A stretch of DNA of 63,588 bases, counting the filler, from Platydemus manokwari (lineage: Eukaryota), in NCBI GenBank assembly GCA_037951405.1. It is 5 parts of 5 records of this genome, joined end to end, with 100 filler letters (N's around TTAATTAATTAA, not from the genome) between each part and the next. Parts side by side here need not be neighbours in the genome. Positions count along the whole stretch, not along the records: positions 1 to 15,748 come from JBBMOY011245874.1; 4 more parts are not named here. The stretch is one strand, 5' to 3'. Both the position numbers and the translations under genes were made by a program. The notes below the pieces were generated by a model, which had not been told where the DNA came from, searched no databases, and saw only the letters and a list, made by a program, of their open reading frames with translations. Below, piece after piece: positions 1 through 14,499 of this stretch. Each line of letters begins with the position of its first letter. The stretch's first letter is position 1.

Positions 1-561
1 GTTGCCAACAATGGTCTATTAAAAGCGAAAATCAAATCAGTCAGCTTTATAATCAATTGTCAAAAAAATCAAATCAGTTTTATAATCAATTGTTAATTTT
101 TTGGAGAATAAATTGTTAATTTTTGGGGAATTGGCTTGCAGCAGATTAATCGAATGAATTGTTTATTTTGGAGAATTGGCTTGCAGCAGATTAGTACATA
201 CTTGAGAACATCTTAAGGCGCATATTTAATAGTTTACAGGGAAATGATTTATTTGGGGTTTTCATGTATCAACAGTCTAATTCTAAATGGGGTTTCGGGG
301 ATTTTTTATATGGTGGTAAATCTAAATAAGGTTTAGGGAATTTTATATGATTTGTTTTTATGTGTGCATTTAGGGAGTTTTATATGGTTTGTTTTTATGA
401 GATTAATGTGTGGTGCCATCCCAACAAACTACAACCAACTATGAAAAACAAGCAGCTCATAAAACTCCTCAAGTGTTACTAGCTAGTGATCAATGAAATG
501 ATATTAAAGTAGTGACAAACTGACTTCTACGATTATTTATGAGAAATGACTATTAGAAATT

Positions 562-1817: not shown

Positions 1818-4309
1818 ATGGTTAGATTTATTTTATAAATTACTTCATTATATTGTTAATTAACCTAAATAATATTTTCTATTAATAATTGATGAAGTAT
1901 TCTATGAATATAATTATTTTTCTAATAACTGGACTAGTTAAATATTAATAGTTTGATTCATTATTATTTGTTAAATTTGCTAGACTCAATTACAACAGAT
2001 GCTCATCGTTAATGCCACTTTGAAATTAAATTCAGTGGGTTACAAACGAAGGTGCATTTATTAAACATGATTTAGAGTTCACGTCGAATAATAAATTTAG
2101 TCAAACAGAAAAGATTTAACTTTAATTATTTTATTTTTATAGCTCGTATTAACTCTGTTGTTAATAGTTTTAATGATGATTTTTATTTATAATAATTAAC
2201 CAAAGATAAGCCAATTTATATAACGTTCTCCAGAGGATTTGATTCGTGTTTGATATTCAAGTTTTATCCAATAAAGTCGCTACTACAAACCCAACCTAAA
2301 GCGTACTATGACTTAAATTCTATGAACCCATCAATAAACAAAGTTGTTGATAAGGTTTTATATAAAAACTTCCTAAAATACTTGAATCTCTTAAATCACT
2401 TTATAACTGCTACCTACCATATAATTTAATTAAAGGTATTTCTAATAATTTAAAAATAATTTACAAAAATTTAAAAATAAATAATTCTTCCCAAATTATC
2501 TTCCCATAAAATGTAATCATTTTACTCAAGTAAAACACTTGTTTAATATTTCTTTAATATTTCTAAATAAATTCCAATATTAGAGAATTACCTGGTTAAT
2601 AAAAGACAATATTCTACAATATATCGGAATATTTTGAAATATTATAATATTAATTATAATAATTTTACTCAAAGAAGATATTTTCTTGTATATTGATAAC
2701 AATAGATGCAAAATAAGCATTATTATTAAAATATTTTTAGAGAGAAGTCATTTGTCTTAACATTGGGCAAGCTGGGGTTCAATTATCAAATGCCGCATGG
2801 GAATTATTTTGCATCGAACATAGCATTGAAGCTAATGGATTGTTAAAAGAGAATTTGTTAGATGAGGAAAACGAATCCTTTAGAACATTTTTCCAAGAAG
2901 TTCCAACTGGACAATTCGTACCTCGAGCAGTGAGTATAGATTTAGAACCCACCGTTATTGGTATGCTGATAATAATTTTATAAAGACTTATTAATTCTTT
3001 AGATGAAATAAGATCTGGACCATATCGAAATCTTTTTCATCCAGATCAATTGATATCGTCTATGGAAGATGGAGCTAGTAATTTTGCACGTGGTTTCTTC
3101 ACAATAGGAAAACGTCAAATAGATTTTCTGACAAATACTATTCGGAAACTTGTTGATGCATGCGAAATGTTGCAAGGATTTTTTGTTGTTCATAGTGTCT
3201 CTGGTGGAACAGGATCTGGATTTTCAACTCTAGCTCTCGACACTCTCACTCTAGAATATACTAAGAGAAACAAATTTCAAATGAGTATCTTTCCTAGCCC
3301 AATGTTATCAACTGCTGTTGTTGAACCTTATAATACAGTGCTTAGCTCAATACGAGCCTTGGAAAATTGTGAGCTGACTAATGTAATGGACAATGAAGCA
3401 ATTTACGGCATTTGCAATACATCTCTTAACATCATAAGACCGACGTATAGTAATATAAACAGAGTTGTATCACAAGTATTCAGTGACATAACGGCCTCAC
3501 TAAGATTTCAAGGTTCATTAAATTCAGACTTAGATCAGTTGTGTACAAATCTTATTCCATATCCTCGAATTCATTTTCCAATTGCTTGTCACACTCCTTT
3601 GACATCAGCAAGTAAAGCTGAGCATGAGCCAATGAATACATTACAGCTAACAAAAAATCTGTTCGATAAAACCAACCAAATGGTAAGTTGTTCTTTGGAT
3701 GAAGGAAAATATATGTGTTGTGTGATCCAATACCGAGGTCGGATTACTCCAAAAGAAGTTAATCAATCAATTTTTGAAATTAAACGAAAAAGTGAAATAA
3801 AATTTGTTGAATGGTGCCCAACTGGGTTCAAATTGGGTGTCAATGGTCAACCACCAATTCGTGTTCCTGGTTCCGACATTGCACAATCAGATCGCAGTGT
3901 CACTATGCTAGCAAATAGTACAAGTATCAAAGAAATATGGGAAAAAATCATTCAAAAATTCGATATTTTATTTTCTAAGAGATCGTTTGTTCATTGGTAT
4001 GTTGGTGAAGGAATGGAGGAAGGAGAATTTAATGAAGCTAGGGATGAAATTGGTGGAATCCACATGGATTATGTTGAGTTGGAAAATTCGGAAGAAGAAG
4101 CACAGGGAGATGAAGCTGGTCCTGTCGAAGAAAAAGAGAAAGCGGCAGTACCGGCTGGAGTTGATCGAGCTGCTACAGAAGAAGAAGTTAAAGCAGAACC
4201 TGAAGCGGAAGAAGAAGAAGAAAAGGTTGAAAAAGAAGAATCGCATGGTAAAGAAGATGAGGATGAAGATGAGGACGAAGACGATGATGAATCGGAAACT
4301 GATAATTAA
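1818..4309 (+). CDS. Divergent alpha-tubulin, ~509 aa; exons 1818-1820 (ATG only, inferred), 2741-2960, 3003-4309
   Basis: Exon 2 reads REVICLNIGQAGVQ...VPRAVSIDLEPTVI. A 42-bp GT-AG intron (2961-3002) leads to exon 3 with SGGTGSG, VVEPYN, PYPRIHF, WCPTGFK and FVHWYVGEGMEEGEF. An ATG-only first exon is typical of animal alpha-tubulins; the nearest upstream ATG|GT I found is 1818-1822, so exon 1 is less certain. Confidence 0.93.
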
Positions 4310-5581
4310 TAATACGCAATTTTGTATAGTTATTAGACACGCTTTTATTGTCATGTAAAAATATTTTTTTAACTTTTAATCCAACCCACAACCTAATTTA
4401 ACCATTTATGTTATATTCATTATTTGGATATAAATATTCAATAAATTTATATTTATTTTTGCTAGTTTTCACTAATATTATAACTAATTATGATATTCAC
4501 TAATTATAATATTATTTCACCCAAGTAATGAGTTAAATTATTTCGAGAAATCTCAAAATCTCAAAATAAAAATGAAATAAAATGCCCGTTTATAAACTAA
4601 ACCAAACTGAAAATATTACTATGGTGTTTTATTGGAAAATTAAATTATAACTTTACAAAATGATAAATTAAACAACATTCAATGCAATAACATAATCTCA
4701 AAGTGCATGATGCTAGGATTTAAGCAATATTCAACGAGTGATTTGAAAATAAATAAAAACAAATGGATTTAAATGTGTATTAAATTATAAGTATGTTTGC
4801 TAATAAGTGAAAGTCGGAATAAAATTCGTATCATAAAATAAAATCATGACAAGTTTATACTTTTTAATAATTTTATGAACATCTCAAAGTTTGATGTTTT
4901 GAAAGTATTCACCAATTGTGTTGATAAAGGGAGTAAAAGTTTTATTTTATATTTTAAAATATTTGTATTCTTATTTAACCAAGTCAGGAAAAGCACTGAT
5001 TTTTAAAAGCATTTATCAAAATCTATGACAGCTAAATAACTTTTCTAGTTCATTGGAGTATACAATAATTTTCAATTCAACTTTATATTAAAATTTGGAC
5101 AAATATTTTTTTAATCCCAGTGGGATCTGAAATCGAAAATTTTACTATATTGGACCACACGTTACATTACCCCTAATTAATTATTGATTAAATTTGTAAA
5201 ATACATATTTCAAAGTTAGACAAAAAGTTTTGTAAATTATAGCTTTATTTAAAAAATATTGCAACTTTATTTTAATTTATTAAATAATTCATTTATTTTG
5301 ACCATTTATTTATCTAATTTTCTTTTTGATTTTCATTTACTAAATCGAGAAAACTTAAATTGATTTTAAATGTATTTGTAATTATTTTATAAAGTTTTTC
5401 TTAAAAGTAAAAAAATAATTTAACAACTACACTGAAAAAAATCATGCATCATCATTTTCCTAAATTTAATATTAATACTATGAAAAAAATTACTTATAAA
5501 AAATTAGTTGTTATAAAATAATTACCTTTTCTTATATTTACACGGTTGTTTTAATTTGCATTATTTTTCACAATTTTAATT

Positions 5582-6763
<1,182 letters not shown>

Positions 6764-7481: not shown

Positions 7482-7700
7482 TTATTTGTCACAACAAGGA
7501 GGTATACAAACACAGCAGTCACAATTCCAAGGATTTTTCCCTTTCATTCCAATATTTGTTGGTAAAATATCATGCCGGTATAAAGATCCTTGTTTGAATC
7601 TATGCATTGAATTACATTCTTGAGCTCTGGCATGAGAAGGTAGATATTGTGGTCTTGCCATATTGAAGTGATATCCTGGAGGATGGAAACATGGTAGCAT
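7482..7700 (-). CDS. 72-aa Cys/Pro-rich microprotein, paralog A of an unannotated family
   Basis: ATG in A-rich context (caaaATG); GC above flanks. Strong peptide similarity to 13645-13872 (H-x3-QEC-x5-F-x-QG-x-LYRHDI-x-P-x2-IGM-x-G-x2-PW) despite diverged DNA. Confidence 0.75.
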   Translation of the reverse strand: MLPCFHPPGYHFNMARPQYLPSHARAQECNSMHRFKQGSLYRHDILPTNIGMKGKNPWNCDCCVCIPPCCDK

Positions 7701-9903
7701 TTTGATGAATTGTTTAAATGGTTACTAATAGCTTGTAATAAATTTGATTTTAAATTCTCAATATATTAATATTGAAATTAACGATTGTTATTTTGAATGA
7801 AAGATAATTTATAAGAAAACTATTTTCCAAATTAGCTACATTTTGAAAATGTTTAGATTAAAAATTCATCATTATTACATTGTTTAAATACTAAAATTTG
7901 TTGCTAACTAACAATTAACTTGTTAACGCCTACAATTATCTGTTAACCTGTGTGTAGCACATTTCATTTTTAATAAAATCAAAATTTAACTAATATTCTT
8001 ACTCATGATATTTATACTCATTCCAAATGTGAAATTTCATCTATGCAAATAGCAATAGTTTATTTTAAAGTTAAGTAGTTAAAATTCAAATAAAGTTAAT
8101 CAAGAAAATATAACTTGAAAAATAAAGTTCATTTTATTCTGATACAGTTTTGACATTTCTAATTCATCTCTAATGATTTCTATTATGACGTCACGACGGT
8201 CATTATAATTGTGACCATCAAGTTTCAGAAATTTAATGTAAATATTTACTGAAATAAAAACACACAATTAAACATCTGTAATTTAACAAAATTATTACAA
8301 TTGCTAATAATGGTAGAATGGTATGAACTACAATAGATGATAAATTGTAATCAATTAGGAACTTTCGAGAAGATAAATTATTTCAAAAATAAAGAGCAAT
8401 TTTCAAAATGAACAAAAAGAACAATTTTTAACAATCTCCTAATCCTAAATGTGTTTCATGATTCAAAAATTTTAATCTCAAGCACTGTAAATGGTTAATC
8501 AATTCGATATGTAAGAACCCAATAATAATGATAAATTGTACTTATAATTTTAAAATATTAATTAATAAATTCATTTAAAAGTAAGAAAAATAAATAAAAC
8601 TCTGAAATTTAAAGGTTACTATTATACGTTTGGCACACTATGACCAATACTATAAATGCTATAAATACCTCGCAACCGGAAAATCTAATTAATCATCTCT
8701 AGATGGATATTCAAGTGAGAATTTTAATTTGTAATTAAAATCAAAATATGTCTAGAATTATAAAAATCTGCAGAAAAATCATTGTCGTCAGAGGAATTGA
8801 TTAGTAGTTACTCCAGGCTATAGATGGAAATTTGGGCAAACAGACATCATTTGAGTAGTAACTTCACCAATTGCATTTTTTGTTTGGAATAGTGTCGGTA
8901 CTGTTGGGTAATAACTAACAATAAAACCTGAAAATTATAGTTTAAACTACAATATCGCAGCTCGATTTATGAATAGATACAGTTAAAATTTTATTACAAA
9001 TCAGTAACAAATTATCATACAAGACGAGATTAGTACCCGAAAGTCAAACAAATGTTGTGTAAATCACAAATCAATCTGTTGGGTTGTGATGGTGGTTAAC
9101 AGTTGTTGGGTCAACTCAACAGCGTGAGTTCACTTGCTTTATATTCAAATGTTTATAAAAAGGAATAACAAACAAACTTGTTAAAAAACTTTTATTAAGC
9201 AAATTATATATTACACAAAAAAAATCGATACAAACGCTTAACTCACACTAATTTTAAAACAACAAGTAGGTGAGGTTATCTCACAGAGACCGTGAGAACC
9301 CAAAAAATTGTCTTAAAAGTTTGTTATAGATTTTATTATTGATATCTCCAAAGGAGATCCTTTAGAGTGCGGTTATATTCACTTTTAGGTTTTAATAAAA
9401 ATGTATTTAGTTATTTACTTTCCAATTCTTTGTTAACTCTATCATACTCTAAATTTCAATTTCTTTCTAAGCTTTCACTTTATCGGCAATTTAATCTTAT
9501 CTACGAGTCCGCTTTATTGGTAATTTGATTAATCTCTAAGCGTTCACTTTACCGATATTTTTAAGAGTGAATTGTGATGGAAATCCATCAGCTTATATAG
9601 ATGCTGAGATTCGGTACTTTGTACCTAGCAATTTTCATCACTCTTGTAAATTTTAAGTCATATTTTTACCTTGGACCTTAATGTTTATAATTCTAAAAGT
9701 CCTAAACCTTAAAAATTCTTAATAATTTATCTAACCTTAGAAATTTTATTATTAAATTATTGACATTACCAATTAAATATTATTAAATCATTGACATTAA
9801 AAATTAAATATTCTATTCCTTTTTTCAGTCTCTGATTTATGAATAATAGTATATACGAAATTATATTTTCCATATTTTTAAAATTCTTTATTCTTTACAT
9901 TTC

Positions 9904-10444: not shown

Positions 10445-10961
10445 CAACAAATCAAAAAGGTCACAAGGACCAAGTAAATAACCCTAAAAAGGTCAATATA
10501 CATGTACCAGATAAAGACATATGTCGTTAACCAATCAGATTCATTCTAATGCTAATCCATATTTAGAATCTAAGAATCGACAGACATATACCTACAAACG
10601 GAAGCTAGCTCAAATATCATCCAATCGCACGAGAAATCTAAGGAAAATCTCACGTGAATGGAAAACGAAGATCCTTGACATCAAACAGACACACCCGATA
10701 GGACTATAAAAGAGGTTGAGTTCTATAGATTCCTACCATTCTTTTTTGGTTAGTAACTTTAATGCTTATCTTATGTGTGATTTTATTAATCAGTCTTTTT
10801 GATTACTTTTCATTCTGTTTTTGACTTTCAGGCACTGATTCCGTCTTGAGGGATTTTCTTTCTGAATGTTGAAAAGATTTGCTGTTGTTATTGAGACTTT
10901 GAGTGTAATATTTTAATTAATACCAATTTTAAGATTTAAATTTTTGATTAATAACCCAACA
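10445..10961 (+). mobile_element. LTR-family copy in plus orientation nested within the 8902-11383 element
   Basis: Reverse-complement homolog of ~11040-11383 and ~50470-50821, with TATA-like ctataaaag near 10704. Ends AACCCAACA; a matching TGTTGGGTT lies at 9077. Confidence 0.7.
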
Positions 10962-13644
10962 TAGAGAAAATAAAACAGCCAAAAGACTGGCAGCTGAAAA
11001 TTAAGTAAAATTCAAGAATATAATACAAATTACCGAGAAAAGAAGTCTGGCAGTTACTCATGGAATTCAACCTCTTTTACATACCTATTAAGTGTGTCTG
11101 CTTGATGTCACGGATATTCGTTTTTCATTTGCTGAATTCGTTCATAAAAAGTTATGTTAGCAATTTCCCTTGCATCTCTTGTACGATTGCTAGTTAACTG
11201 AGATTGCAGCCATTTGTTGGTATACACCAGTTGATTTTTAACTTCTAAATATGGATTAATTTTAGAAAGAATCTGATTGGCTGTTGAGACGTGCATTTGT
11301 CGGATCTGGGTATGTCAATCCTCTTAAGGGTTATTTCCCTGTGTTCTGTAAACATTTAGGCTGAATTTGTGATCTACCCAACAGTACAAATAGCCCTATG
11401 CAAGTATTTTACTACAATTGTTCTTTATGGCGTGATATTTTTACACTTAAATTTAGCAACTCAGCAGTCGGATTCAACTTCTATTATTGTATACTTGATT
11501 TACTATATATAACCATTGTTGAATTGTCAATAATGTTTATTTATCTCATTATTATCGATATAAACACGCAATTTAAAAAAGAATCAGATAAGTGGGGACA
11601 GCACAATAATCTAATTAAATATTGCACTAAATAAAACTTGAGATAAATAACATAAGGAAAACATTATCAGACGTGTGTATAAAGACTTAAATTAAATTGA
11701 CTAAGAAAAAGACCACTTGTTAAGGATTTTTTTAAAATGAATTTTCATGAATTTGTTTTAAGTTATATCTCATAATGGATCATTACCATATTCATGTTTG
11801 GGAAATCGTATCTCATTCTTTAATATTTAAGAGCCTGATTATGAAGAATACATCAACTATGGTCTTGTAGTACTTAATCGACGGTATCAACATATTCATG
11901 AACATGAAATGGCAGCAAATAATAGCTTCTTAATCAATATTGATAAATATTAAAAGGAGACGATTGTTGAGGAGGAAACTCATTTTTCTCTCAATATCAA
12001 TGGTGAATAGTTCTATGAATGATACTTTGGTTAAAAATAACAAATGTGTTTTCTTCTTTCTATTCTCCCTTAAACAATATGAACTCTATAAAAAATTAAA
12101 TTTTATTTTCAATAACTTGATTGGGTTTCTATCTGATTCCAAATGTATAAGTAATTATAGTTTTACGATTGAGAGGAACTGAATTATATTACACAATTAT
12201 CAATCTCAATGAAGTTAGATCCTATAGCTTATTTATGTAATTAAAAAGTCAAAATAAATTCTGATACAACTATATGTTAACGTTCGAATAATTCAAATGG
12301 TATAAATAAGCCATTTTATTTATATATAAAACTTTCATAAACAATACTCAAATTATCATTTATTTATCAAACAAATCAAAATTTATAATTAAAAAACAAA
12401 TGAGTGGATTTACTCGTCGAGAGGACGAGTGCCAAAATTACGCATCAATTTACGGTTACATATATTTTTCTAATATGTTATGCAATAATCTTCAAGATAA
12501 AATCCCTTGAAGAATAAATAAATTATATCATTTACCTATAACTTCAAATCAAATGCCCTCCGTAAATGTACTCTCAAACACAACTTATTTAGTCCAATAA
12601 TTGTTAAGCATAGTTTTATTCCAGTACTATCCAAATTATTATCACTTGAAAATTAGTTATCACCATTTCAGTTCTATCAAATGATATTTAAGTAAATTTT
12701 TGTGTCTTTGTCTCATTACGTGCTTCGTGTATATATTATTTTTGAGGTTAAATGCCGGTTAAATGTCGGTGAACTATTTTATTCACCTAATTTTCTGTAT
12801 ATTCAATACACATTATTAATTTTAATCGTGTGTAATTTTTCATTTTGCTTGTCTTGATTTCTAGATATTAATTTTCAATTTACTTTTCGGAATTTCTAAC
12901 TTGTGTATCAGATTTAATTTATTCAGTTTGTTAATCTGGAATGACTCATTCATGTTGGATGTTTATTTTTAATTCTTAATGTGGCTGATTATTTGTAGTG
13001 CGACTGATTATTTTTAATCGTAGTTGATTAATTATGTCCCGGATTTACTATTCTGCTTTATTCAGATATTTATTTAATATAATTATCTTATTCTCCTTAC
13101 TTTATATAAACTTCAACGTTATTTTTAGATATACTGTTATTACTATTACAAATACATATTTCTAATACAAATTTCTAATATACTAAAATTAATTTATTAT
13201 ATTGAGTAATATAATTATACCATTATATATTATTTGTAGTTCTATTTATGAACAAATTATTTATTATTTTATCCATTTCCTATGTCATAAAACAATACAT
13301 TTAATTACCAAAAATGGTCTTGTTCAATATAGAATAGTAAGGATAATTAAAAAAACGAAATTTTCTATTTTATTAAAACCACCAAAGTCAGTAATCCGAA
13401 ATGGGTACTTTTCCAAAAAAAGATTATCAGTGAGCAACCTGTATAAAATTTATAAAGTTACAACTTGATAAGAAAAGTTTTCCAGTACACTTTGAGACAA
13501 GATCCATATACGATAATATTTATAAAATTACATTCTCATCATTCGATAAAAGCATTTTGAAGATTTCTTTGATCAGATAATATTAGAAAACTCTTAAATA
13601 AACTGGAAGTCATCAATGTAATGATTTTATTTATATAATTTTCT

Positions 13645-13872
13645 CTATTCATAATCACATGGGCATCGAGGCTTTAACTTACTGTAAGGATTGCTATGCC
13701 AAGGTGTTCTACCACACATTCCGATTGGACTCGGACCAATGTCATGACGATATAGAAAGCCTTGAGTAAATGGGTTAATTAAACTACATTCTTGACCTTT
13801 TGTATGAGGTGATTGACCAGGTACTGGCTTAATACAGCCTTCATCATTCATTGGATCACAAAAATTTTGCAT
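13645..13872 (-). CDS. 75-aa Cys/Pro-rich microprotein, paralog B
   Basis: Shares the QEC / QGxLYRHDIxP / IGMxGxxPW motif with 7482-7700. AATAAA lies ~14 nt past the stop, and the shared upstream motif sits at the same distance from the ATG. Confidence 0.75.
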   Translation of the reverse strand: MQNFCDPMNDEGCIKPVPGQSPHTKGQECSLINPFTQGFLYRHDIGPSPIGMCGRTPWHSNPYSKLKPRCPCDYE

Positions 13873-14499
13873 ATCAATTAATTATTTGATTTATTAAATT
13901 GCTAATAGTTACAAATTGATTTTTAATGAAGAATATTATCAAATTAATCAACGGTTATTTTGAATTAGTGATAATACTCACAACAATATATCATTTTCTT
14001 GAACTGTTTGTCTATCGTTTTCGTCCAATTGGTGTACTTTTGGATATGATTAGTATGTAAAAAATAATGTTTTATATAAAGTGAGTTTTGTTTTACTATA
14101 AAATGCTAAGTTTTTGATTCATGATGACTATATTGCTATGCATGTATTGTTAAGCAAAACTGAATTTGACGAATGAAATTTATTTATTTATATTGACTCT
14201 AATCAAACCAAGCCAACCTTATAAGATTTTATGAAAATTCGGAAGATAAAATTATAAGAAAAACGAGTTTCTTCAAATATAATCTTGATTTGAAATATGA
14301 TAGTATCGATTTCTTATGCAGTATCTGGTGACCAAATTTTTCATTTTGAATGTTTAGATGAGATTTCTAAATATCTTTCTGGCTTCTGATAGTCATTCCT
14401 TGAAAGGATGTCTGAAATCAAAATTTAAGTGGGTTTTATCTTTAACCAGTTTTCACTTATTGAAATATAGAAGAATCTCGTAGCAAAGTAACAACTTTG

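Follow-up and report, generated by a model that had tools for sequence, protein, structure and literature searches.

An alpha-tubulin gene of Platydemus manokwari with glutamine in place of Glu254, and its divergent relatives in flatworms

The dynamic instability of microtubules rests on one alpha-tubulin residue, Glu254, which, together with Asp251, completes the E-site of beta-tubulin in the neighbouring dimer. Glutamine resembles glutamate in shape and has no capacity to act as a base. To our knowledge, hydrolysis-dead microtubules are known almost only from laboratory mutants. Two further traits, Lys40 and the C-terminal tyrosine, are typical of alpha-tubulin without being universal, and the tails of canonical alpha-tubulins are about 14 residues long.

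The consequences of changing Glu254 have been described for engineered human tubulin. The E254A substitution blocks GTP hydrolysis in the lattice, whereas with E254D hydrolysis is approximately four-fold slower and catastrophes hardly ever occur (PMC7018511). According to QM/MM calculations, Glu254 deprotonates the lytic water directly, without a water wire (PMC10319017). The first-pass annotation of the locus considered here had taken this role of Glu254 in lattice hydrolysis as established, and the mutant data and the calculations bear it out. More generally, microtubules of E254 mutants hydrolyse lattice GTP slowly or not at all, seldom undergo catastrophe, bind EB proteins over the length of the lattice and nucleate readily (PMC7018511, PMC8764682). 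The two studies describe E254A, E254D and E254N, and E254Q is not among these mutants; the term has no occurrence in PMC7018511.

A natural precedent exists in coccidia. According to a bioinformatic survey of apicomplexans, alpha3-tubulin carries threonine at position 251, glutamate at 253, glutamine or histidine at 254 and a tail of 48 residues; it was predicted there that GAP activity is slowed or absent and that the polymers are stabilized (PMC10056924).

The gene described below was found in a window of 63,588 nucleotides (filler included), composed of five joined parts of the genome of the flatworm Platydemus manokwari (GCA_037951405.1); the gene lies in the part derived from JBBMOY011245874.1. 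Its features are collected in Table 1. Joining of the two coding exons produces a frame that is open over 508 codons, and the region of the second coding exon contains a long ORF (3050-4309), which matches alpha-tubulin chains of the PDB with E-values of about 1e-132. The position of the 42-nt intron is shared with three related contigs (L001, L003 and L004), and the context of the acceptor preceding codon 2 is common to the window and the contig of the orthologue, L001. No tRNA was found in a tRNA scan.

Table 1. Coordinates of the alpha-tubulin gene and its elements (positions are those of the whole stretch).
Feature	Positions	Strand	Remarks
AG splice acceptor	2739..2740	+	directly precedes codon 2 (AGA GAA GTC = R2 E3 V4)
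Coding exon A	2741..2960	+	alpha-tubulin residues 2 to about 75; exon model, translation
Intron, 42 nt, GT..AG	2961..3002	+	phase 1, within the Asp76 codon
Coding exon B	3003..4309	+	remainder of the GTPase domain, intermediate and C-terminal domains, tail; TAA at 4307-4309
End of T7 loop and start of helix H8	3521..3553	+	N-S-D251-L-D253-Q254-L-C-T-N-L
D253 and Q254 codons, GAT CAG	3533..3538	+	T253 E254 in canonical alpha-tubulins; family signature
C-terminal tail, 73 residues	4088..4306	+	37 D/E, 7 K/R; ends in ...ESETDN
AATAAA, probable polyadenylation signal	4440..4445	+	131 nt past the stop; sequence only

No Met1 codon adjoins the first coding exon, and it is expected upstream. In the paralogue contigs L003 and L004, which come from another sample, a mini-exon ending in ATG/GT is followed by a short intron and then by codon 2. 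By analogy, a similar ATG mini-exon would be expected upstream of the window gene; candidate ATG/GT sites, identified from the nucleotide sequence, are at positions 310, 384, 922 and 1818. A Met1 supplied by a spliced leader ending in AUG (SL trans-splicing) had also been considered and was dropped as the favoured option, the mini-exon of L003 and L004 being an ordinary one. Thus, the description of the gene as intact in the first-pass annotation stands as far as the 508 open codons and strong purifying selection (see below) are concerned, although the Met1 codon has not been located.

The gene product is, judging from its sequence, a very divergent alpha-tubulin of the tubulin/FtsZ superfamily. 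Both the Tubulin (PF00091; E-value of 2.9e-30) and Tubulin_C (PF03953; E-value of 1.2e-40) Pfam domains were recognized. When the product of exon B was compared with PDB chains using phmmer, it aligned without gaps to residues 93-448 of TUBA1B (E-value of 8e-133), and all of the best 60 matches listed were to alpha chains. In phylogenetic trees, which were built without beta- or gamma-tubulin outgroups, the protein is placed among the alpha-like sequences. With canonical alpha-tubulin (TUBA1B, PDB 3j8x_A) it shares both domains, the N-site residues (G10, Q11, A12, Q15, E71, D98, S140, G143-G146, N206 and N228), N249 of the T7 loop, D251, N258, K352, the alpha-specific loop lengths and the GEGMEEGEF motif; the GQAGVQ motif is encoded by exon A. 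Nevertheless, its identity to canonical alpha-tubulins is only about 54%, and it differs from them in the substitutions T253D, E254Q, F255L, Q256C and N101S, as well as in the signature SGGTGSG, found instead of GGGTGSG. The last signature and N101S are common to the window protein and its orthologue P0007. In addition, the H1-S2 loop is three residues shorter than the canonical one, the aligned position 40 is occupied by N or E, so that the K40 acetylation site is absent, and the 73-residue acidic tail lacks the terminal tyrosine, ending in ETDN. The family to which the protein belongs departs from canonical alpha-tubulins at approximately 70 positions whose conservation in the latter is 95% or higher, many of them at the surface or in loops.

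The replacement of Glu254 is unambiguous at the level of the alignment. Translation of positions 3521-3553 yields NSDLDQLCTNL, and the segment 'dldqlc' of the query is positioned under 'dltefq' of TUBA1B. The codons are GAC (3527-3529) for D251, TTA (3530-3532) for L252, GAT (3533-3535) for D253 and CAG (3536-3538) for Q254. Both the glutamine at position 254 and the new aspartate at position 253, which had been read from the nucleotide sequence in the first-pass annotation, were therefore recovered in the gapless alignment. The change lies well outside chance variation: in a reference set of canonical alpha-tubulins comprising 74 distinct domains, each of E254, F255 and Q256 is invariant (74/74), and T253 is present in 71.

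A word search was used to look for relatives of the window protein. Glutamine was found at position 254 in six of the 120 best matches, and glutamate in every other match in which the motif was found. When limited to the T7/H8 region, the word search retrieved three proteins only. The window protein, the six matches and one additional sequence, P0271, form what we refer to as the core clade (n=8), which received a support of 97 in a quick tree and of 93/90 in a more careful one. All eight members possess D251, D253 and Q254, a combination of the latter two residues that is found in none of the 74 canonical domains, and their tails are 40-105 residues long and mostly acidic. The core-clade proteins are 55-60% identical to each other, which is about equal to their distance from canonical alpha-tubulins; the D-Q motif has thus been retained through long divergence. 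Four of the members (P0007, P0028, P0032 and P0092) originate from one run, and the family therefore appears to be multi-copy per genome, unless this run, with contigs ranging from 38 to 57% GC, mixes organisms. P0271 is encoded on a 1460-nt contig (L005) by an uninterrupted full-length ORF that continues across both intron positions, and for this reason the contig is probably the mRNA of a core-clade member.

The window protein is sister to P0007 (support of 100/100), the orthologue encoded on the genomic contig L001. The two proteins are 86% identical, and their genes agree in the acceptor preceding codon 2 and in the positions of the introns. The nonsynonymous distance between them is 0.087 in the core and 0.43 in the tail, whereas dS is saturated (maximum likelihood estimate of about 12; undefined by NG86 and YN00); GC3 is 24% in the window gene versus 78% in the orthologue. 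Purifying selection on the core is thus strong, whereas the tail evolves under weaker constraint but retains its acidity and shares the final six residues with P0007. Outside the window, the D-Q motif is encoded by different codons in six other contigs of other runs, Gln254 being specified by CAG in L001, L004 and L005 and by CAA in L002 and L003. Since Q254 is invariant across the whole clade, it is a selected trait of a natural isotype and not a slip. The comparison of orthologues for Q254 conservation and dN/dS that had been proposed in the first-pass annotation thus came out in favour of conservation, with Q254 in 8/8 proteins and an orthologue that likewise lacks Glu254. The idea of a natural isotype, put forward there, holds as well; what has to be amended is the treatment of the protein as a single oddity, as it is a member of a multigene family.

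In order to extend the family to named organisms, a profile search was performed against 1.84 billion cluster representatives, in which 146 further alpha-like representatives were listed. A recognizable T7/H8 motif was present in 101 of these, and about 27 lacked E254 (one deletion artefact was set aside), the residue being replaced by Q, D, H, A, S, V, G or L. Two of the clusters without E254 are named, those of Fasciolopsis buski (I-Q at positions 253-254) and Sparganum proliferum (P-Q), whose branch is very long. The Fasciolopsis protein, used in turn as a query, revealed a trematode clade, supported at 100/100, that includes proteins of Fasciola gigantica (TPP57341), F. hepatica (THD23318), Opisthorchis viverrini, O. 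felineus, Clonorchis, three Paragonimus species, Echinostoma caproni and Calicophoron daubneyi. The named relatives are thus trematodes and one cestode, and named members of the family are so far confined to Platyhelminthes. In databases, the trematode Q/H254 proteins are labelled merely 'Tubulin alpha chain', and no account of a D253-Q254 or Q/H254 family was found in the literature searched on E254 and flatworms.

The trematode proteins resemble the window protein in the lack of Glu254, in the N-terminal sequence MREVI..GQAG.QLSNA.WEL and in the possession of long tails. However, they are only about 45-50% identical to it, and residues 253-256 are mostly T-Q-L-E, as opposed to D-Q-L-x; the exceptions at positions 253-254 are A-Q in Calicophoron, I-Q in Fasciolopsis and T-H (codon CAT) in F. 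hepatica. Their tails are also rich in serine, whereas that of the window protein is acidic. The trematode sequences therefore constitute a sister or related clade and are not orthologues of the window gene. An acidic residue is always located near position 254: D253 in core-clade proteins, E256 in those of trematodes and D251 in either group.

In the careful tree, a group with moderate support (87/76) unites the core clade with that of the trematodes and a small number of unnamed sequences, and a single clade (99/99) holds the canonical alpha-tubulins, whether from plants, fungi or animals (a tapeworm among them). All non-canonical sequences are on long branches, and their placement outside the canonical clade consequently reflects fast evolution and is no guide to age. 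This topology would fit a loss of E254 that happened only once, but it does not prove it.

Information on expression comes from the F. hepatica member of the family, which has H254 (THD23318.1, UniProt A0A4E0RQL1, locus D915_005547). In the spatial transcriptome of the adult fluke, D915_005547 is a marker gene of the testis cluster (AUC of 0.825; detected in 90% of the spots versus 38% of other spots) and of the ovary cluster (AUC of 0.715; 85% versus 45%) (PMC11484910, supplementary data 2). The gene is thus expressed and gonad-enriched, in both testis and ovary; the ovary signal in Fasciola argues against a purely sperm-specific role. The interpretation given in the first-pass annotation is thus supported in part: GTP-locking, service in cortical or axonemal microtubules of sperm and compensation by D253, all suggested there, are hypotheses. 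The 'testis-specific tubulin alpha' of the same atlas was considered as the Q/H254 gene and rejected, as it corresponds to a different locus, D915_001685 (A0A4E0S3J4). For the window gene itself, no RNA runs containing it were found.

Compared by description, the window family and alpha3-tubulin of Toxoplasma gondii and its relatives have in common Q/H254, an acid at position 253 and a long tail (PMC10056924), that is, three of the four alpha3 features, the exception being D251. The latter is replaced by threonine in alpha3, which also has an insertion in the N-terminal MREI, whereas the window protein keeps D251 as well as R2-E3. As coccidia belong to a different eukaryotic supergroup, independent origin of the two groups by convergence is likely on comparative grounds. 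The engineered E254 mutants share with the window protein the changed residue, but are single changes in a canonical chain, whereas the natural protein carries many more.

Taken together, we are inclined, with somewhat better than even confidence, to assign the gene to an old family of divergent, multi-copy alpha-tubulins that always have another residue in place of E254 and in which activation of the GTPase is presumably lost or weak, resulting in stable lattices. The protein would most likely be an alpha isotype with little or no ability to activate GTP hydrolysis on the underlying beta-tubulin, thereby giving rise to long-lived microtubules. The alpha fold and the GTP-binding residues of the N-site are kept in the family, whereas Glu254 has given way to glutamine in the core clade and to glutamine or histidine in the trematode clade. 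Within a protofilament, the T7/H8 element of alpha-tubulin enters the pocket that holds the nucleotide of the next beta-tubulin below, and Glu254 accepts the proton from the attacking water there; with glutamine at this site, hydrolysis of GTP on that beta subunit should be very slow or fail altogether. Lattices, or patches thereof, rich in the isotype may remain GTP-like and resist catastrophe, while the long acidic tail and the lack of both the terminal tyrosine and K40 could provide for distinct binding partners and modifications. The sequence features and their conservation, the purifying selection, the structure of the family and the gonad-enriched expression in a fluke are shown by the present data, whereas the pairing with beta-tubulin, the lost activation of hydrolysis, the stability of the arrays and the tissue in which the protein acts in P. 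manokwari are inferred.

The constant presence of an acid nearby means that the catalytic base might have been shifted or the reaction merely slowed. In this case, D253 (or E256 in trematodes and E253 in coccidian alpha3) would substitute for Glu254, or D251 would suffice, and microtubule dynamics would be tuned by slower hydrolysis and not locked. The uniformity of D253 in the core clade, at a position where 71 of the 74 canonical domains have threonine, is in line with such a shift, and so are the recurrence of an acid beside Q/H254 in three separate groups and the retention in all eight core-clade proteins of D251, the second residue implicated in catalysis. E254D tubulin, moreover, still hydrolyses GTP, albeit four times more slowly (PMC7018511). 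On the other hand, taking one methylene off the side chain at position 254 itself already slows the reaction four-fold (PMC7018511), and a carboxylate shifted by one residue along the helix faces elsewhere. In the QM/MM calculations E254 always acts directly, without a water wire (PMC10319017), and position 253 is not acidic in the trematode clade, so that D253 is no general requirement of Q254 proteins. We therefore consider a relocated catalytic acid unlikely, though a serious contender.

Less probable still is that the protein is not an ordinary lattice subunit. Its dimers might occupy special places, such as a cap, seed or template, or it might have a non-polymerizing role, in which case the missing glutamate would signify the loss of a function that is not used. 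The low identity (about 54%) to canonical alpha-tubulins, which are otherwise near-invariant in eukaryotes, and the roughly 70 changed positions, many of them at the surface or in loops, do suggest that the protein may not act in the ordinary way, and E254 is replaced by varied residues in about 27 of the 101 motifs of divergent alpha-like representatives. On the other hand, the N-site residues, N249, D251, N258, K352 and the alpha loop lengths, which an assembling subunit needs, are all kept, and within the clade position 254 is not free to vary. As for a sequencing or assembly error or a decaying pseudogene, to which the separation of Met1 from the first coding exon and the failure to find an RNA run with the gene might point, we regard it as highly improbable: the 508 codons are open, the GT..AG intron is at a conserved position, the D-Q motif recurs with different codons in six other contigs, the core dN is 0.087 against a saturated dS, and a separate ATG mini-exon is normal in the paralogues.

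The novelty of the loss of activation that we favour is lowered by the published coccidian precedent. The idea itself is already known from alpha3-tubulin (PMC10056924); the present case is a selected alpha-tubulin without E254 as a family trait in animals. A broader proposal, which we advance tentatively and would not yet lean towards, is that flatworms possess an old multigene family whose alpha-tubulins by nature cannot set off GTP hydrolysis, that arrays of the germ line or other long-lived arrays are built as microtubules permanently in the GTP state, and that coccidia evolved the same solution independently, with Q/H254, an acid shifted to a position nearby and a very long tail. A conserved natural family devoid of E254 would show that the nucleotide state and stability of the lattice can be set by the tubulin sequence and not by MAPs, and the family would offer a natural reagent for work on the GTP lattice. 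The likely convergence with coccidian alpha3 suggests that there may be a general way of making arrays stable. Finally, tubulins of parasitic flatworms are drug targets, and isotypes of this kind may affect the action of microtubule drugs.

The divergent alpha-tubulin gene lies in a compact locus, as a phosphatase gene is located only 1.3 kb downstream of it; the GC content of this tubulin-phosphatase locus is 28%. The protein encoded by the phosphatase gene ends in ...RRTPDYFL, as is typical for PP2A-like enzymes.

Several repeats were also found in the window. The piece carries direct repeats at its 5' end, recognised by eye; their units include ...aatcaattgttaattttt.ggagaat... and ...ggcttgcagcagatta... 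The inverted repeat, which may be a transposon remnant, is associated with similar ORFs on opposite strands (10521-10709, + and 11108-11296, -). Each copy of the dispersed repeat contains a short Cys-rich ORF, and the two ORFs (72 and 75 aa) resemble each other (e.g. ...QGSLYRHDILPTNIGMKGKNPW... versus ...QGFLYRHDIGPSPIGMCGRTPW...); neither of them had a Pfam match.

Features outside the tubulin gene (window positions)
Feature	Position	Strand	Remarks
Short direct repeats	40-200 and 290-400		5' end of piece; spotted by eye only
PPP-family Ser/Thr phosphatase catalytic subunit gene	5592-6763	+	several short exons; Pfam Metallophos match
Dispersed repeat, two copies	7482-7808 and 13645-13975	-	copies ~6.17 kb apart
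Inverted repeat	arms 10657-10787 and 10999-11129		131-nt arms, 70% complementary, 211 nt apart

Four family paralogues were recovered from run SRR33002330, on contigs L001-L004, the GC contents of which differ widely (38, 40, 54 and 57%); this spread reflects either a single genome of heterogeneous base composition or a mixed sample.

Among the divergent alpha-like cluster representatives P0121-P0266, E254 is absent from approximately one quarter of the recognisable T7/H8 motifs, its place being taken by D, Q, H, A, S, V, G or L. In three related representatives (P0154, P0156 and P0164), one residue appears to be deleted at this site.

Trematode-clade proteins (P0280, P0285-P0288, P0291 and P0305) read T-Q-L-E at positions 253-256, whereas Asp occupies position 253 in the core clade, the D253-Q254 alpha-tubulins that include the window protein. 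Compared to the canonical E254-F-Q256, the trematode motif looks as if Glu and Gln had exchanged positions. Residue 254 differs between sister species, being Gln in Fasciola gigantica (P0280) but His, encoded by CAT, in Fasciola hepatica (L006, positions 5760-5774; JXXN02002213.1). This difference matches the Q/H alternation at position 254 reported for coccidian alpha3-tubulin (PMC10056924), a natural alpha isotype without E254.
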